A DNA stretch of 64,000 nt from Saccharolobus islandicus REY15A (GTDB lineage: Archaea > Thermoproteota > Thermoprotei_A > Sulfolobales > Sulfolobaceae), in the NCBI RefSeq assembly GCF_000189555.1, contig NC_017276.1. One strand, 5' to 3'. Of the stretch, positions 9,049 through 15,224 are shown in pieces. The notes under the pieces are model-generated. The model was not told where the DNA came from, ran no database searches, and saw only the letters and a program-made list of their open reading frames with translations. The position numbers and the translations under genes are program-made. How positions within the stretch are numbered: position 1 is the first letter of the stretch; each line of letters opens with the position of its first letter.

Positions 9049-9091
9049 TGGGCCCGCTGGGATTTGAACCCAGGACCTCTGCCTCGTAAGG
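9049..9091 (-). repeat. Attachment-site direct repeat (3' 43 nt of tRNA-Val), left end of the element
   Basis: TGGGCCCGCTGGGATTTGAACCCAGGACCTCTGCCTCGTAAGG is identical to 15150-15192. Confidence 0.97.
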
Positions 9092-9247
9092 ACTCATACA
9101 GTTGCAATCTTCCGATATATGCAACGCATATATGTTGCGTCTAAATATTTTAAAACATGAAAATCTCATGTATGGACTATTTAAATAAATAATAGGTGAA
9201 AACGTTAGCTCTTGCGTCTTATTATTCCATACTTAACTCCATTCCTA

Positions 9248-9338
9248 ATGAACCCTTCATCTCCACCGGGAAACAAGTTATTCAAAAAATAGCAATTAAT
9301 GTACATTTATTTCATGAATCCCTTATCTGCAGGGAAAC
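9248..9338. repeat. Two imperfect hairpin-forming direct repeats separated by 39 nt
   Basis: ATGAACCCTTCATCTCCACCGGGAAAC (9248-9274) and ATGAATCCCTTATCTGCAGGGAAAC (9314-9338). Confidence 0.55.
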
Positions 9339-9380
9339 TCGATATTTTATAGAAGTAATTGAAAGATAAGAATGATAGAA

Positions 9381-10916
9381 TTAAGTTAAATCTAAAATTA
9401 AATTATCCCTAACATAATCCGGTAAATCTAACTTATTGAAGACTCCTACAAAATGCCAATAGGGAATTTTAACTTCCTTCTCCTTCTTCCTAAGAAGAGA
9501 AGGAGAGTAAGAGCTATGGCGTTTACCAAATAGCCAATAACCGTAAACCTTAGCCTGGTCTTCCTCTTCAACGCTAAACAAATTACCGTTAGCTATAAGA
9601 TAAGCCATTTTAAGAGCGTATTTTAGCACGTATTGCTTAGGGGATAGTATTTTCCTATATGCAGCACCACTGCTATATTCTATAACTGCATCTTTTGGTG
9701 GCTTTCCCTTCCACTTACCGTACTTAATTCTGTGGATTTCGTTTACCGGTCCTTGAATTCCCTCCTTCCTCTTAAAGTCCAAGTAAGCCTGGAGTAAATT
9801 CATATGAAGAGCTGACCCAAAATCCTCTAGAATGTCCATTAACCACTTATCAAGAAGAGCCGTAAATATGTACTTACTGATAAGCGTCTTATCCTTGGGC
9901 TCTAACTTCTTCTCTTTCATCTTTGCTTCCAGGTCTGAGGGTAAGGAGATATTATATCGATAACGTCTAGTATAGTATGTGAAAGGGTCTTCTTTCTTAC
10001 TTCCGAATTTCCTACTCCAATTTATAAGATATGGTATACCAAAGATAAAAACGTGAACGTGAAGAACGTAATCACCGTGAAATTCATAAGCCGTAAAGGT
10101 CTTGATATCCTCACCCTTCCACATTTCTCTTACCCATTTTACCATTCTATTCTTAAGCTGAGTTAGAATAGAGTCTTGTAATGGAATATAACCAATAACC
10201 TTTCTTCCCTCCTTCAACGGAATCACGAGAGGGAATATATGAGGGGTTGTAAGCGTAATCATAATTGCGTTCTTGTATTTCTTGAAGGCATTATCTAACG
10301 CCTTACTACTCTTTATTACTTGTATAAGAGCCTTTTTATTATCGTTAAACCTTGTCTTTTCGGGCATGATCATAAAGTTCCCATTATCGTCCTCAAGGAC
10401 TATAACATTCCTATTCCACTCCTTTATGTTCTCTCTGAATAGGAAAGCGATATCTGAATACTCTCTAGTGCAAGGGCATATTGAGTGCTTATACTGAGAA
10501 ATAAGAAGTGCTCTTTGCCTATATCTGTTAGCCCTTGTGATAACCCTTATCCCTATCTTCCTCAACTTTTTTATTTTTTGCTCTCTGTTTGTGCTTTTTC
10601 CTAAACTGTCAGAATTGCGATTACTTAAACTCAAGTCAAAGCTATCGTTAAGCCGAAAATTTTTTGTTGAAGGTAAAACAAATTGAATTGGCAATTTTTT
10701 CAATTTAAATGAGACCGGATAAGTAGGCAAACGTTCTACTATCCCATTCTCTACAAGGGTTTTAAGGTGTCTTTCAAGTATCTTATAGGCTGAGCGCTTT
10801 GATATTCCCCTCTCCTTTGCATAGTCCTCAGCCATAATAGTAAGTGAGACTGAATTTTCCTTCTTTAGTCTATTTATAATCCAAGAATCAACAAAAGAAG
10901 GAGAAAAAGAGTACAT
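9381..10916 (-). CDS. rep: Rolling-circle replication initiator (HUH endonuclease, two-Tyr type) with N-terminal wHTH
   Basis: Motif I MITLT (about 10248-10262), motif II LHVHVF (HVH at 10053-10061), motif III YVLKY (9618-9632), in canonical order. Confidence 0.85.
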   Translation of the reverse strand: MYSFSPSFVDSWIINRLKKENSVSLTIMAEDYAKERGISKRSAYKILERHLKTLVENGIVERLPTYPVSFKLKKLPIQFVLPSTKNFRLNDSFDLSLSNRNSDSLGKSTNREQKIKKLRKIGIRVITRANRYRQRALLISQYKHSICPCTREYSDIAFLFRENIKEWNRNVIVLEDDNGNFMIMPEKTRFNDNKKALIQVIKSSKALDNAFKKYKNAIMITLTTPHIFPLVIPLKEGRKVIGYIPLQDSILTQLKNRMVKWVREMWKGEDIKTFTAYEFHGDYVLHVHVFIFGIPYLINWSRKFGSKKEDPFTYYTRRYRYNISLPSDLEAKMKEKKLEPKDKTLISKYIFTALLDKWLMDILEDFGSALHMNLLQAYLDFKRKEGIQGPVNEIHRIKYGKWKGKPPKDAVIEYSSGAAYRKILSPKQYVLKYALKMAYLIANGNLFSVEEEDQAKVYGYWLFGKRHSSYSPSLLRKKEKEVKIPYWHFVGVFNKLDLPDYVRDNLILDLT

Positions 10917-10927
10917 AACTTAAGCCC

Positions 10928-11236
10928 TTAAGGTCTCTGTAAGAGGACATCAACCTTTTGATATAACTTCCTTTCCCAATAATACTCTAAATCGTTAGGT
11001 AATGTAATGATATAGTAGTTATTATGCCTTGAAGGAGTCCTTATCCCTATTGGAAACTCCTTACTATCTACTATAATCGTTACTAACCATTCCTTATCCT
11101 TAACGTAAGCCTCAAAGTCTCTTGGAATATAAATAAAGTACTGAGAGTACTCGTATTCCCTTCCCTTGTTGTTAATGTGCCTAGTAAGTTTCTGCAGTTT
11201 AACGCCTGGAATAAGAAGTTGGGGAATTTCAAGCAT
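10928..11236 (-). CDS. Small protein with tandem AbrB/SpoVT-like (swapped hairpin) motifs
   Basis: QYFIYIPRDFE and YYIITLPNDLE repeats. Probable start is the ATG at 11236, overlapping the upstream stop. Confidence 0.55.
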   Translation of the reverse strand: MLEIPQLLIPGVKLQKLTRHINNKGREYEYSQYFIYIPRDFEAYVKDKEWLVTIIVDSKEFPIGIRTPSRHNNYYIITLPNDLEYYWERKLYQKVDVLLQRP

Positions 11237-13218: not shown

Positions 13219-13250
13219 TTGAATGCAAGTTTGAATCAACATTGAATCAA
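13219..13250. promoter_or_regulatory. Tandem TTGAAT(G)CAA boxes upstream of the 121-aa gene
   Basis: Copies at 13219-13228, 13231-13239 and 13242-13250, plus one at 13153-13162. Confidence 0.45.
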
Positions 13251-13597
13251 GAGCCTAAGGACACTAGATAAAATTAGTTATTGTGATAGTTAGTTAAAAT
13301 CTATTCATTTATTGTATAGAAAGACTAAAGAAAACGGATATTTTTAAAAGCAATAGAGAATTATCACGTTAAGAAAACTTTCCGAAATTACTCGATTTTT
13401 CATGAAAGCACAAATTTCCCTTATTTTTTTATGAAAAAAGCATTTACTTAATGAGAAATTTCTGTAAAGGCGTTTCATAGAAAAACGAACTGACTTTACT
13501 AATGTACTTAGCGTGGCAATTTCAGAAATCTACATTAAGGGTTTAAGAGGAAATAAATCTTATATGCAGTTTCCTCTTTTCCCTTGTTAAGTAGTTC

Positions 13598-13702
13598 TAA
13601 AATGACCTCATATACATCTTTATAGTACTTGTCTTCATTCATTAGTTCTTTAATCATCTCTTCTATTTCTTCTTTTTTAGGTCTAGGAATTTCATCTTCC
13701 AT
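13598..13702 (-). CDS. Possible 34-aa micro-ORF or remnant downstream of the integrase
   Basis: MEDEIPRPKKEEIEEMIKELMNEDKYYKMYMRSF*; GGA shortly before the ATG. Confidence 0.3.
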
Positions 13703-13758
13703 GTTTATCCAGTAATATGAACTAGTTTAGAATTTTAAACATATTCTCTAGTTTAAAA

Positions 13759-15039
13759 CTAGAGAAGCTTGGGGGCGTATTTATCATACCATTCCCTTAG
13801 CTCAATTTCTGATATTACGAAATAGTTCTCCTCCATGATCCTAAATTGTTGAGGAGGTGCTCTGCCTTGCAGCAAGTTCACTATTGTACCCGGAACTTTT
13901 TGCTTAATCATGTAAGAAGTGAAGAAGCTTCTGAGATCATATAATCTAAACTCTTTACCCAAAATCTTCCTCATAGCCTCTTTAATCTCAACCCTAAGAT
14001 TATCTTCTCTGAAGGGGAATAGTTTACTCTTCCACTCCTCTATGTTAATACCTTGGGTGGGGTTAGCTTCTGCTAACTTCTTCAAAGAACTCTCGTATTT
14101 CTTAATAAATTCCTCACGGTAGGGTAAGTAGATATCTTTTAGCCATTTAGCCGTCTCTTCATGAAGAAATGTTATGTAAGCTCTCTTAGTTTCACTGACT
14201 TTGCCCAGGTGAATTATCCTGTGCTCAAAGTCCACCTGGTCTACCCTTAAGTTAAGGACTTCCCCCACTCTCAATCCCGTCTCAGCTAAGAGAAGGAAGA
14301 ATGCTTTAGCACCTAAATCCTTTATATTATTAAATATTTGTTTAATAGTGGCTATATCGGGGATAAAATGCTTATACTTAGGCTTAGTTTTAGGAGTTTT
14401 AAATGATTCGTAAAGCTCTCTTGCAATCCTCGGGCTCTTAGGCTTTATTATCTCTCTGATAAATAATTTTAAAGCCTTGGCAGCATGTTCAGCCCTCCCC
14501 TTACTTTCCTCTGATAGGTCTAAAATGTACTCCTTTAACTTAGTAGGAGTTAACTCATAACCCAGTTCAGCTAAAGCCCTCCTTAAGTAATTTATTCTCT
14601 CTTGTGCAGTCTTCTTACTCTTCTCTTGCCTTACCAGTTTCTCAAAGAGTTCAACATCTTCTTTTGTAACTAAATAAGAATTTGAGGGCTCTCTTAAGTA
14701 ATCCCCTAATTCTTGCCATAGTAATGTAAGGAAGAAGTTCCTAAAGCCCTCATCCTTCTTAGCCTTAACTATCACACTTATAGCAGTAGTAGGGTCTACA
14801 TCAGTACTCCTTAAACCGTAAATTATATCACTTAACTCATCAGCTGTTAAAAGTTCTGAGGCCTTCTCAACAACCTCATTAGGGATCCTCTGAATCTTCC
14901 CGTTCAGGTAACGATTTAATGTTGACCTATCTACACCTATAAAACGGGAAACGTAACTTAGGCCATGCTTTTCAATTGCCTTTTTCAATACGTTAAGCTT
15001 TTTCTGGTCATCTATTTTCTCCACGTTAATTTTTGACAT
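13759..15039 (-). CDS. int: Tyrosine integrase, pNOB8-type (unsplit), with N-terminal HTH
   Basis: N-terminal LSYVSRFIGVDRSTLNRY HTH, ETGLRVGE (catalytic R), YDLRSFF, C-terminal ENY tyrosine; gene lies wholly inside the att sites. Confidence 0.93.
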   Translation of the reverse strand: MSKINVEKIDDQKKLNVLKKAIEKHGLSYVSRFIGVDRSTLNRYLNGKIQRIPNEVVEKASELLTADELSDIIYGLRSTDVDPTTAISVIVKAKKDEGFRNFFLTLLWQELGDYLREPSNSYLVTKEDVELFEKLVRQEKSKKTAQERINYLRRALAELGYELTPTKLKEYILDLSEESKGRAEHAAKALKLFIREIIKPKSPRIARELYESFKTPKTKPKYKHFIPDIATIKQIFNNIKDLGAKAFFLLLAETGLRVGEVLNLRVDQVDFEHRIIHLGKVSETKRAYITFLHEETAKWLKDIYLPYREEFIKKYESSLKKLAEANPTQGINIEEWKSKLFPFREDNLRVEIKEAMRKILGKEFRLYDLRSFFTSYMIKQKVPGTIVNLLQGRAPPQQFRIMEENYFVISEIELREWYDKYAPKLL

Positions 15040-15149
15040 AAAATCTCTTTACCACTTATTAACTTTTACATTGTTGCAAATTTAACCTTTACTGTTGCAT
15101 TCACGCATCATTCTATTAATAGAATCACTTTCAATTATATAGAAATATA

Positions 15150-15224
15150 TGGGCCCGCTGGGATTTGAACCCAGGACCTCTGCCTCGTAAGGGCAGCGTC
15201 CTAACCAGGCTAGACGACGGGCCC
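15150..15224 (-). tRNA. tRNA-Val(TAC), integration target
   Basis: GGGCCCG/CGGGCCC acceptor stem, CTGCC-CTTACGA-GGCAG anticodon arm. Confidence 0.96.

Follow-up and report, generated by a model that had tools for sequence, protein, structure and literature searches.

An integrative element at tRNA-Val in Saccharolobus islandicus that combines a predicted HUH rolling-circle initiator, a solo Cas4 and a pNOB8-type integrase

The Sulfolobales serve as the principal model in the study of archaeal plasmids and viruses, and the small plasmids known from this order all use, to our knowledge, replicases of either the primase-polymerase (prim-pol)/helicase or the MCM type. The small Sulfolobales plasmid pSSVi, described by Wang et al. 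in 2007 (Virology 363:124), is reportedly a 5.7-kb integrative, non-conjugative plasmid of S. solfataricus with a copG gene and a large Rep lacking a prim-pol domain; it reportedly targets a tRNA-Arg gene and carries neither plrA, nor transfer genes, nor a Cas4. The pSSVi integrase is of the SSV type, which splits on integration (PMC8371274), and the Thermoproteota are absent from the main text of a survey of HUH replication initiators (PMC6668415). The subject of this report is a 6.1-kb element at positions 9049-15192 of a 64,000-nt stretch of the Saccharolobus islandicus REY15A contig NC_017276.1 (the whole of which is termed here the window). Between its terminal repeats lie eight open reading frames (ORFs), all intact and all on the minus strand, encoding Int, orf55, orf121, CopG, Cas4, orf128, orf102/107 and Rep. 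Judging from sequence comparisons, this is probably an intact, recently mobile integrative plasmid from a family of Sulfolobales elements whose replication depends on a rolling-circle initiator of the HUH type.

The repeats are 43-bp direct repeats, identical at 43 of 43 positions, that a repeat search located at 9049-9091 and 15150-15192; by our own estimate the chance expectation of an exact 43-nt pair within 8.5 kb is ~1e-18. The right copy lies inside a tRNA-Val(TAC) gene (15149-15225, minus strand; Rfam score 66 bits) and, because it covers that gene from the anticodon through the 3' end, the tRNA stays intact. The element unit comprises 6,101 bp, that is, 6,058 unique bases plus one att copy. 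When the flanks are joined in silico with one att copy, the product is identical at 999 of 999 positions to the empty sites of S. islandicus CP001400, AHJP01, AHJQ01 and AHJT01, and 99.1% identical to those in CP001399 and CP001404; the tRNA-Ser/tRNA-Val interval is empty in these six genomes. This 100% identity of the flanks to element-free strains indicates that the insertion is very recent. Many S. islandicus genomes, the six with an empty site among them, share one identical sequence of the alcohol dehydrogenase that neighbours the element; over 17.6 kb the window matches the deposited assembly GCA_016415645.1 at 100%. Strain AHJL01 harbors, at the identical site and with the identical 43-bp core, a different member of the family (6,617 bp, 81% nucleotide identity, with an extra orf177); with two variants at one site, no fewer than two insertions have taken place at this tRNA-Val, and hosts that are otherwise nearly identical differ in whether and in what form they carry the element. 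These comparisons establish a precise insertion, in which a 43-bp attP core recombined site-specifically with the 3' part of tRNA-Val. An initial annotation, made from the letters of the window, had proposed an integrative element bounded by identical 43-bp repeats of the tRNA-Val 3' half; the exact repeats and the four perfectly matching empty sites bear this out, as do, for the tRNA-derived character of att, the second variant at the same site and the relatives found in tRNA-Val(TAC) and tRNA-Val(CAC) genes.

From these data the attachment sites can be delimited. The left site, attL (9049-9091), is a copy of the 3' part of tRNA-Val(TAC), from the anticodon to the 3' end, and the right site, attR (15150-15192), is the same core within the functional tRNA gene, as identified by repeat and tRNA searches. 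Internal to attL is the non-coding P-arm of attP (9092-9380, minus strand), between the rep stop codon and the att core, and internal to attR is the P'-arm (15040-15149, minus strand), between the att core and the start of int; these are homologous to the left and right sides, respectively, of an unrecombined attP in a metagenomic relative (L061, see below). The hexamer TGCAAC is repeated at 9101-9106, 9120-9125, 15073-15078 and 15094-15099--within the element it occurs beside the att copies only--and these repeats are candidate integrase arm sites. As a separate observation, the insertion site lies ~8 kb from genes for orc1/cdc6, GINS, MCM and two RFC subunits (window 1-6400, in synteny with L011), and this proximity to chromosomal replication genes suggests that it is probably close to a chromosomal origin.

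The gene next to attR, int (13759-15039, minus strand), encodes a 426-residue protein in which Pfam, tblastn and alignment distinguish an N-terminal XRE-type helix-turn-helix (HTH) and a pNOB8-type tyrosine recombinase domain. Its Pfam matches are to Phage_integrase (9.7e-12), to Phage_integr_3 and, at the N-terminus, to HTH_3; an N-terminal HTH has been noted previously in integrases of the pNOB8 type. In tblastn searches it is 46-56% identical over its full length to integrases of pNOB8, pKEF9, pARN, pHVE14 and pAH1-type plasmids (for pNOB8 itself, 45.7% identity, 100% coverage, E 4e-113). Residues R257, Y367-D-L-R370 and Y406, which do not vary when Int is aligned with the integrases of pNOB8 and pRT2, conform to the R...YxxR...Y signature of pNOB8-type integrases (PMC8371274). 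The att core lies outside the gene, 110 bp from int, and int is intact in the integrated state. Int is evidently an unsplit pNOB8-type tyrosine recombinase, and its module is laid out like that of conjugative plasmids from the Sulfolobales; the signature and the 46% full-length identity to the pNOB8 enzyme agree with its earlier description as such.

That layout recurs in the 29.5-kb plasmid pRT2 of S. tengchongensis, which has a 61-nt tRNA-Val-like attP (NZ_CP146017 5341-5401; L100 3001-3061), 91% identical to the element's att and positioned ~105 bp upstream of an integrase 51% identical to Int. This common arrangement implies that the int-attP module is shared by conjugative plasmids and the element, and small and large plasmids thus appear, from their sequences, to compete for the same tRNA-Val sites.

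Contigs of relatives document two further states of such elements: a closed circle and an attP that has not recombined. Metagenomic contig L006 (JGI 3300026813, 7,672 bp) has a 141-nt terminal overlap, yielding a 7,531-bp circle with the gene order Cas4-orf128-orf102-Rep-orf200-Int-orf303-orf121-CopG; Rep and Int adjoin in this circle, whereas they occupy opposite ends of integrated copies. In contig L061 the order is Rep-orf200-attP-Int, the attP having a tRNA-Val(GAC)-like core that is not recombined; to one side of this core lies a homologue of the window's attL-proximal arm and to the other a homologue of its attR-proximal arm. Integration is into tRNA-Val(TAC) in another relative (L020) and into tRNA-Val(CAC) in others (L008, L009, L025 and L032), and some of their right-end repeats are hybrid. 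For elements in tRNA-Val(CAC), the right-end repeats (L008 7217-7262, L009 7076-7120 and L032 7140-7184) are 89% identical to the tRNA copy, and the T-arm part of these hybrid repeats matches the window's tRNA-Val(TAC)-type core. Such hybrid att sites look like the outcome of integration into a non-cognate tRNA-Val isoacceptor, with the crossover placed roughly near the anticodon side.

At the opposite end of the element from int, rep (9381-10916, minus strand) encodes a 511-residue protein for which motifs, an AlphaFold2 model and Foldseek searches suggest an HUH nuclease core preceded by a winged-helix domain at the N-terminus. Its three motifs read I220-T221-L222-T223 (motif I, xITLTxP), H286-V-H288 (motif II) and Y429-V-L-K432-Y433-xx-K436 (motif III); among 21 Rep homologues that are 52-76% identical, motif I, H286-x-H288 and Y429-V-x-K-Y433-xx-K436 are all invariant. 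In the AlphaFold model (pLDDT 80, pTM 0.71) the HxH motif lies on a strand (285-292) and the tyrosines on a helix (426-442). Searched with Foldseek against viral models (BFVD), it matches first a homologue from the bicaudavirus SMV2 (3e-33), then protein 1 of Halorubrum pleomorphic virus 1 (HRPV-1; 9.5e-11) and then many microvirus initiators (1e-4 to 1e-3). A precomputed match to PF23343 (REP_ORF2-G2P) exists for some close homologues, and distant relatives found by a family-profile search score 29.4-34.3 bits, above the cut-off for that family, and also touch Phage_GPA; some divergent members are labeled in databases as 'rolling circle replication-associated protein'. Among 1.84 billion representatives the Rep profile picks out a tight family, with 12 clusters at E<=1e-30 rising to 144 at E<=1e-3; against PDB sequences it finds no match even at E 10, and NCBIfam has no model for Rep (nor for orf55, orf102, orf121 or orf128). 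The motifs, the predicted fold and the distant relatives above the PF23343 cut-off support the identification of Rep, already made in the initial annotation, as an HUH rolling-circle initiator, here of the two-tyrosine type. The SMV2 protein itself (KP238129 42308-43159; L001 4995-5846) is a 283-residue homologue of the Rep core (54% identity, 3e-88), truncated so as to lack the N-terminal winged-helix region and annotated as hypothetical. In silico, empty sites exist, circular and attP forms occur in relatives and the Rep motifs are conserved--the points on which the initial annotation had made its proposal depend.

Homologues of Rep are encoded by S. islandicus, S. shibatae, Sulfurisphaera tokodaii strain 7 (BAB67615), S. 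ohwakuensis, Acidianus brierleyi and Metallosphaera, and are common in hot-spring metagenomes, a single metagenome scan returning 120 relatives; A. brierleyi and Metallosphaera sedula are further named as sources of a Rep or Cas4 homologue. The operon is conserved: copG-cas4-orf128-orf102-rep synteny is seen in ~20 loci spanning five Sulfolobales genera (Saccharolobus, Sulfurisphaera and Metallosphaera among them) and metagenomes. Two groups of relatives can be distinguished: (i) group A, with 62-76% Rep identity, has the block CopG-Cas4-orf128-orf102-Rep, usually together with Int, orf121 and a variable set of orf303, orf200 and orf177; and (ii) group B, with ~50-70% Rep identity and making up the majority of relatives in metagenomes, consists of circles of 4.9-5.8 kb that have no integrase and no Cas4. 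Group B circles carry the plasmid regulator PlrA (PF05584, 1.5e-29), ribbon-helix-helix (RHH) proteins and five conserved ORFs without an assigned function; the contigs L037 (5,915 bp), L067 (4,971 bp) and L073 (5,116 bp) have terminal overlaps of 140, 90 and 127 nt, respectively. Some 40 further metagenome loci resemble these three, one of the five conserved ORFs having a Pro/Thr/Ser-rich N-terminus, and the group B backbone is pRN-like, with an HUH Rep in place of the prim-pol RepA. These circles could be either plain plasmids or something virus-like.

Because Rep is the only recognisable replication protein in group B circles, they provide the best argument that Rep is a replicase. They also bear on the idea that Rep is a relaxase or transposase-like nickase serving mobilisation only, in which case the circle would be a non-replicating excision intermediate. 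HUH enzymes do include relaxases and IS91/Helitron transposases, and a Helitron transposase is the top PDB fold match of Rep (E 0.04). What makes this quite unlikely is that group B circles offer no other candidate for replication, that the closest families (PF23343, Phage_GPA and the microvirus and pleolipovirus Reps) are replication initiators, and that integration is already accounted for by the tyrosine integrase.

The window element is the smallest member of group A, having none of orf200, orf177 and orf303, and this is one reason to ask whether it is instead a fixed, decaying remnant, now immobile, in which Rep and Cas4 either do nothing or have been recruited to another function. Integrated elements of S. 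islandicus are often non-functional (PMC3718332), and decay is visible elsewhere in the family: the copy in Metallosphaera yellowstonensis has lost int and orf121 and has its rep in two ORFs. We nevertheless regard a remnant as unlikely, given that the att copies remain identical at 43 of 43 positions, that all eight ORFs are intact, that the flanks are 100% identical to those of element-free strains and that a second variant has used the site independently.

Two of the relatives deserve separate description. In M. yellowstonensis MK1 (NZ_JH597761, L002 7456-11084) the decayed member keeps CopG-Cas4-orf128-orf102-Rep-orf200, without an integrase, orf121 or a nearby tRNA, its rep region consisting of ORFs of 98 and 323 residues. 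The S. tokodaii strain 7 copy has no adjoining tRNA (ARAGORN) and no direct repeat of >=30 nt; a resolvase/HTH_17 gene and two other ORFs sit at the expected tRNA position upstream of int (L003 1869-3731).

The replication operon opens with copG (12300-12473, minus strand), encoding a 57-residue CopG-like RHH protein (Pfam RHH_1, 5.4e-7, 29.8 bits, cut-off 20.5) that is not similar to the CopG proteins of pRN plasmids. The second gene, cas4 (11593-12246, minus strand), encodes a 217-residue PD-(D/E)xK nuclease of the Cas4 family with four cysteines suggestive of an Fe-S cluster. It scores 81.4 bits on TIGR00372 (cut-off 65), also matches Pfam PDDEXK_1 and Cas_Cas4, aligns full-length with SSO0001 (PDB 4IC1) at E 8.3e-53 and, in that alignment, shows a D...EIK motif, C44 and a C-terminal CxxCx5C. 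There are no cas genes beside it (its neighbours being copG, orf128, orf102 and rep) and no tandem CRISPR array in the window; lacking cas1/cas2 or an array, it is classed as a solo Cas4 or one of the mobile genetic element (MGE) type. The search for homologues returned only element-borne copies and not SSO0001. The solo Cas4-like nuclease of the initial annotation is thereby confirmed (81 bits on TIGR00372 against 65; E 8e-53 to SSO0001).

Next come two small genes without a Pfam-based identity. The first, orf128 (11229-11615, minus strand), overlaps both cas4 and orf102 and is conserved, with 73-80% identity across seven loci and a match to PHROG 37938 (3.6e-67) that has no functional label. 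The second, orf102 (10928-11236, minus strand, or 107 residues if begun at an upstream GTG, 10928-11251), is immediately upstream of rep, a position it keeps in all group A loci, and belongs to no Pfam family. Its AlphaFold model (pLDDT 87) shows a small beta-barrel with an internal duplication; among PDB structures it matches PG0164 best (2d9r, E 0.023, probability 1.0) and, after that, Mj0056 and FNR-type barrels, which we take to be the swapped-hairpin/cradle-loop barrel neighbourhood. The initial annotation had termed this protein AbrB-like, a label that finds no Pfam support and is loosely right at the fold level only, as predicted by the model. The start/stop overlaps that it had described along the operon hold for cas4/orf128 (23 nt) and orf128/orf102 (8 or 23 nt), but not for copG-cas4 and orf102-rep, which are separated by gaps of 53 and 11 nt.

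Upstream of this operon are two genes that the initial annotation, whose coordinates and gene order otherwise stand, had not described. The product of orf121 (12743-13108, minus strand) has an RHH-like N-terminus (a weak Pfam DUF6290 match, residues 18-42) and is the most conserved protein of the family, with 87-90% amino acid identity where Rep has 67-76%; it is a probable DNA-binding regulator. The small acidic orf55 (13535-13702, minus strand) is known from the ORF list and from synteny, with no significant family in Pfam or PHROG. At this place, between int and orf121, most group A relatives have a membrane-anchored ORF of 303 residues, orf303, with a strongly hydrophobic C-terminal segment (19-residue hydropathy 3.1; for example, L003 5169-6080, with equivalents in L006-L009, L032 and L033), where the window and its two closest relatives have an ORF of 53-55 residues.

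Conserved non-coding DNA provides candidate origins. Over the 140 nt upstream of orf121, identity is 90-99% in all 12 of the 12 orf121-carrying loci, exceeding that of the flanking genes. Within this near-invariant block (13133-13250, minus strand), an iteron of 11-12 bp occurs three times in tandem (13217-13250) and once more at 13149-13162; the block also holds the orf121 TATA box (13133-13142) and the inverted repeat AATATTG-ATAAG-CAATATT (13161-13179). A structured single-stranded DNA (ssDNA) or RNA element is ruled out by fold z-scores of ~0, from which it follows that the conservation acts at the sequence level; Rfam finds two tRNAs only, and no RNA family in the block. The TTGATA within the inverted repeat presumably resembles the pC194/phiX nick site CTTG^ATA, and the repeat was accordingly considered as a nick hairpin; this was downgraded when a second copy was found at the copG promoter, which fits an operator better. 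The copG promoter region (12478-12511, minus strand; repeat search) consists of a TATA-like box (12478-12488) and, beside it, the inverted repeat AATATTGATAAGCACTATT (12493-12511), which nearly duplicates that upstream of orf121; the repeat AATATTGATAAGCA(A/C)TATT at the two promoters is a candidate shared operator. Just after orf121, an inverted repeat search locates a 32-bp palindrome (12705-12736) that as ssDNA has z = -3.8 and -3.4 on its two strands (0 of 200 shuffles being as good) and that shows two compensatory changes among ten relatives. The palindrome is a candidate hairpin or cruciform origin element or dimer-binding site; the iteron/inverted-repeat block is a candidate double-strand origin and/or operator. 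The iteron block is absent both from group B plasmids and from the vicinity of the SMV2 Rep gene.

These components suggest the following scheme. Int would recombine attP with tRNA-Val, and excision would yield a circle that replicates in a rolling-circle mode. Rep would bind the origin--either the iteron/inverted-repeat block (13149-13250) or the covarying palindrome (12705-12736)--through its winged-helix domain and nick one strand with Y429/Y433, the metal being held by H286/H288; a host polymerase and helicase would then displace this strand, which Rep would religate. CopG and the RHH-like orf121 would repress the two promoters that share the inverted repeat. Cas4, orf128 and orf102 would be co-translated with Rep and act with it, their likeliest role being the processing of the displaced or nicked strand; an alternative is that they interfere with CRISPR spacer uptake by the host.

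Several observations weigh against the conclusion that this copy is an intact, recently mobile rolling-circle plasmid. The Rep of the window scores 17.9 bits on PF23343, under the cut-off of 27.8, and its PDB fold matches are weak (E 0.04-0.1: Helitron 0.04, AAV Rep 0.07 and MVM NS1 0.1). The evidence for circles comes from relatives that are only 70-77% identical and not from this copy, which, lacking the orf200, orf177 and orf303 that most relatives have, could be a reduced, less autonomous derivative. As to the origin, the palindrome has two non-compensated (mismatching) variants among the ten relatives, and the iteron block, which travels with orf121 and is absent from group B, may be an operator only. 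The role given to Cas4, finally, is purely inferred.

A further issue is how the element spreads. None of its proteins is a capsid or transfer protein in Pfam and PHROG searches, as the initial annotation had found by inspection, and spread from cell to cell would consequently require a helper: a virus, vesicles or a conjugative plasmid. This leads to a refinement of the integrative-plasmid reading, which is possible though doubtful, in which the element is a virus satellite or helper-dependent plasmid like pSSVx and pSSVi, replicating itself and being either packaged by a Sulfolobales virus or mobilised by a conjugative plasmid. The missing virion and transfer genes favor this, as do the int-attP module common to conjugative plasmids, the SMV2 Rep-core homologue, which shows that genes have passed between such elements and viruses, the 75.7% identity of a 107-nt stretch with an intergenic region of STIV1, and the fact that fuselloviruses package small Sulfolobus plasmids (PMC3543421; bioRxiv 10.1101/2025.02.15.638363). 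No homologue of the fusellovirus packaging or morphogenesis genes was found, however, unlike in pSSVx; more generally, phage-record searches revealed no fusellovirus genes, and the integrase is not of the SSV type. Nor was any relative seen among IMG/VR viral contigs or any helper identified. The STIV1 stretch corresponds to window positions 12210-12318 (the 3' end of copG and the 5' end of cas4) and to STIV1 AY569307 14570-14676 (L099 1501-1607; E 4e-9), where it falls between B164 and B345, the coat protein gene, in an interval that bears no annotation.

Alternatively, the element might be the provirus of an unrecognised small pleolipovirus-like or ssDNA virus, with the ORFs lacking an assigned role specifying its structural proteins. 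The best non-self fold match of Rep is, after all, HRPV-1 Rep-like protein 1, the element's genes fall in PHROG families, a collection compiled from viral genomes and predicted prophages, and several ORFs are without a known function. Yet those ORFs (orf55, orf121, orf128 and orf102) encode small, soluble, DNA-binding-like proteins with a maximum 19-residue hydropathy of <=1.4, and none of the element's proteins has a transmembrane-like segment. Pfam and PHROG searches detected no membrane or spike family, no capsid candidate and no NTPase beside Rep, and there is no hydrophobic or large ORF. Moreover, group B relatives carry the plasmid regulator PlrA and IMG/VR holds no match, all of which makes a provirus very improbable. 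The integrative rolling-circle plasmid remains the probable interpretation.

The family appears not to have been characterised. Megablast of the whole element finds nothing in phage records and, in plasmid records, the 61-nt att only; tblastn of Rep against PLSDB, which includes pRN1, pRN2, pHEN7, pSSVx, pXZ1 and pDL10, finds nothing; and a scan of IMG/VR finds no contig with this Rep. DNA and protein searches of phage records (INPHARED) return only the SMV2 Rep homologue and the short STIV1 stretch. Pattern scans of a genome collection gave no hit with a single-protein query and M. yellowstonensis only with an alignment query, but these are insensitive, since copies exist in S. tokodaii and S. 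islandicus. Full-text literature searches, the coverage of which excludes most subscription papers, uncovered no description of HUH-Rep plasmids in Sulfolobales, and no such plasmid is described in an archaeal integrase review (PMC8371274), the HUH survey (PMC6668415) or a Cas4 phylogenomic study (PMC5704561). The earlier suggestion of a little-described family is thus in keeping with the absence of PLSDB, INPHARED and IMG/VR matches and of a describing paper; from the sequences compared, the family is apparently undescribed, being set apart from pSSVi by description only, as the pSSVi sequence was not compared. The element is not categorically new: it is a new combination of known modules in a new host group.

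A broader and more tentative proposal, which is less likely than not to hold, is that this is the first HUH-Rep rolling-circle plasmid lineage to be recognised in the Sulfolobales and the Thermoproteota, that it is abundant in acidic hot springs both as free pRN-like circles and as tRNA-Val-integrating elements, and that in the integrating branch Cas4 and two small proteins are obligatory partners of Rep--Cas4 serving as part of a replication machine or as a decoy against CRISPR spacer acquisition rather than as a CRISPR component. An HUH-Rep family common in hot-spring metagenomes would, if real, add a new replication mode to the Sulfolobales. As a compact 6-kb backbone capable of integration at, and excision from, tRNA-Val, the element would lend itself to use as a vector; its strictly conserved cas4-orf128-orf102-rep operon is a tractable genetic setting in which to explore the role of a solo, MGE-borne Cas4 outside CRISPR; and the shared int-attP module documents the exchange of modules between conjugative and small plasmids.

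How, then, does the element compare with described systems? Like pSSVi, it is a small Sulfolobales plasmid integrating into a tRNA gene, but its integrase is of the pNOB8 type and whole, and its target is tRNA-Val. With the pRN family (pRN1, pRN2, pHEN7, pDL10, pSSVx and pXZ1) it shares the host group, the size range and a replication operon led by CopG. The pRN RepA, however, joins a prim-pol domain to an SF3 helicase, whereas the element's Rep is an HUH nuclease without a helicase; Pfam finds neither a prim-pol/SF3 helicase domain nor PlrA (PF05584) in the element's proteins, PlrA occurring in group B relatives only. Rep is closest to initiators of the REP_ORF2-G2P/phiX174 gpA type, which are found in Microviridae, Inoviridae, alphapleolipoviruses and pGRB1- and pTP2-like archaeal plasmids: they have the same motif order (I-II-III), the HxH, two tyrosines four residues apart in YxxKY and a common fold, with no fused helicase (family overview, PMC6668415). 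It differs from them in its marginal sequence similarity, in its extra N-terminal winged-helix region and in sharing an operon with Cas4. The closest solved relative of that Cas4 is SSO0001, the solo Cas4 of S. solfataricus, which has the same D...EIK and CxxCx5C plus an N-terminal cysteine; SSO0001 is described as a chromosomal gene, whereas the element's Cas4 is the second gene of a plasmid replication operon. The integrases of pNOB8, pKEF9, pARN3/4, pHVE14, pAH1 and pRT2, finally, are homologous to Int over their full length, with the same N-terminal HTH and signature, and conjugative plasmids of the pNOB8 type have attP ~105-110 bp upstream of int, as the element does; but those plasmids are 20-42 kb in size and carry conjugation genes, whereas the element carries none and has an unrelated replication module.

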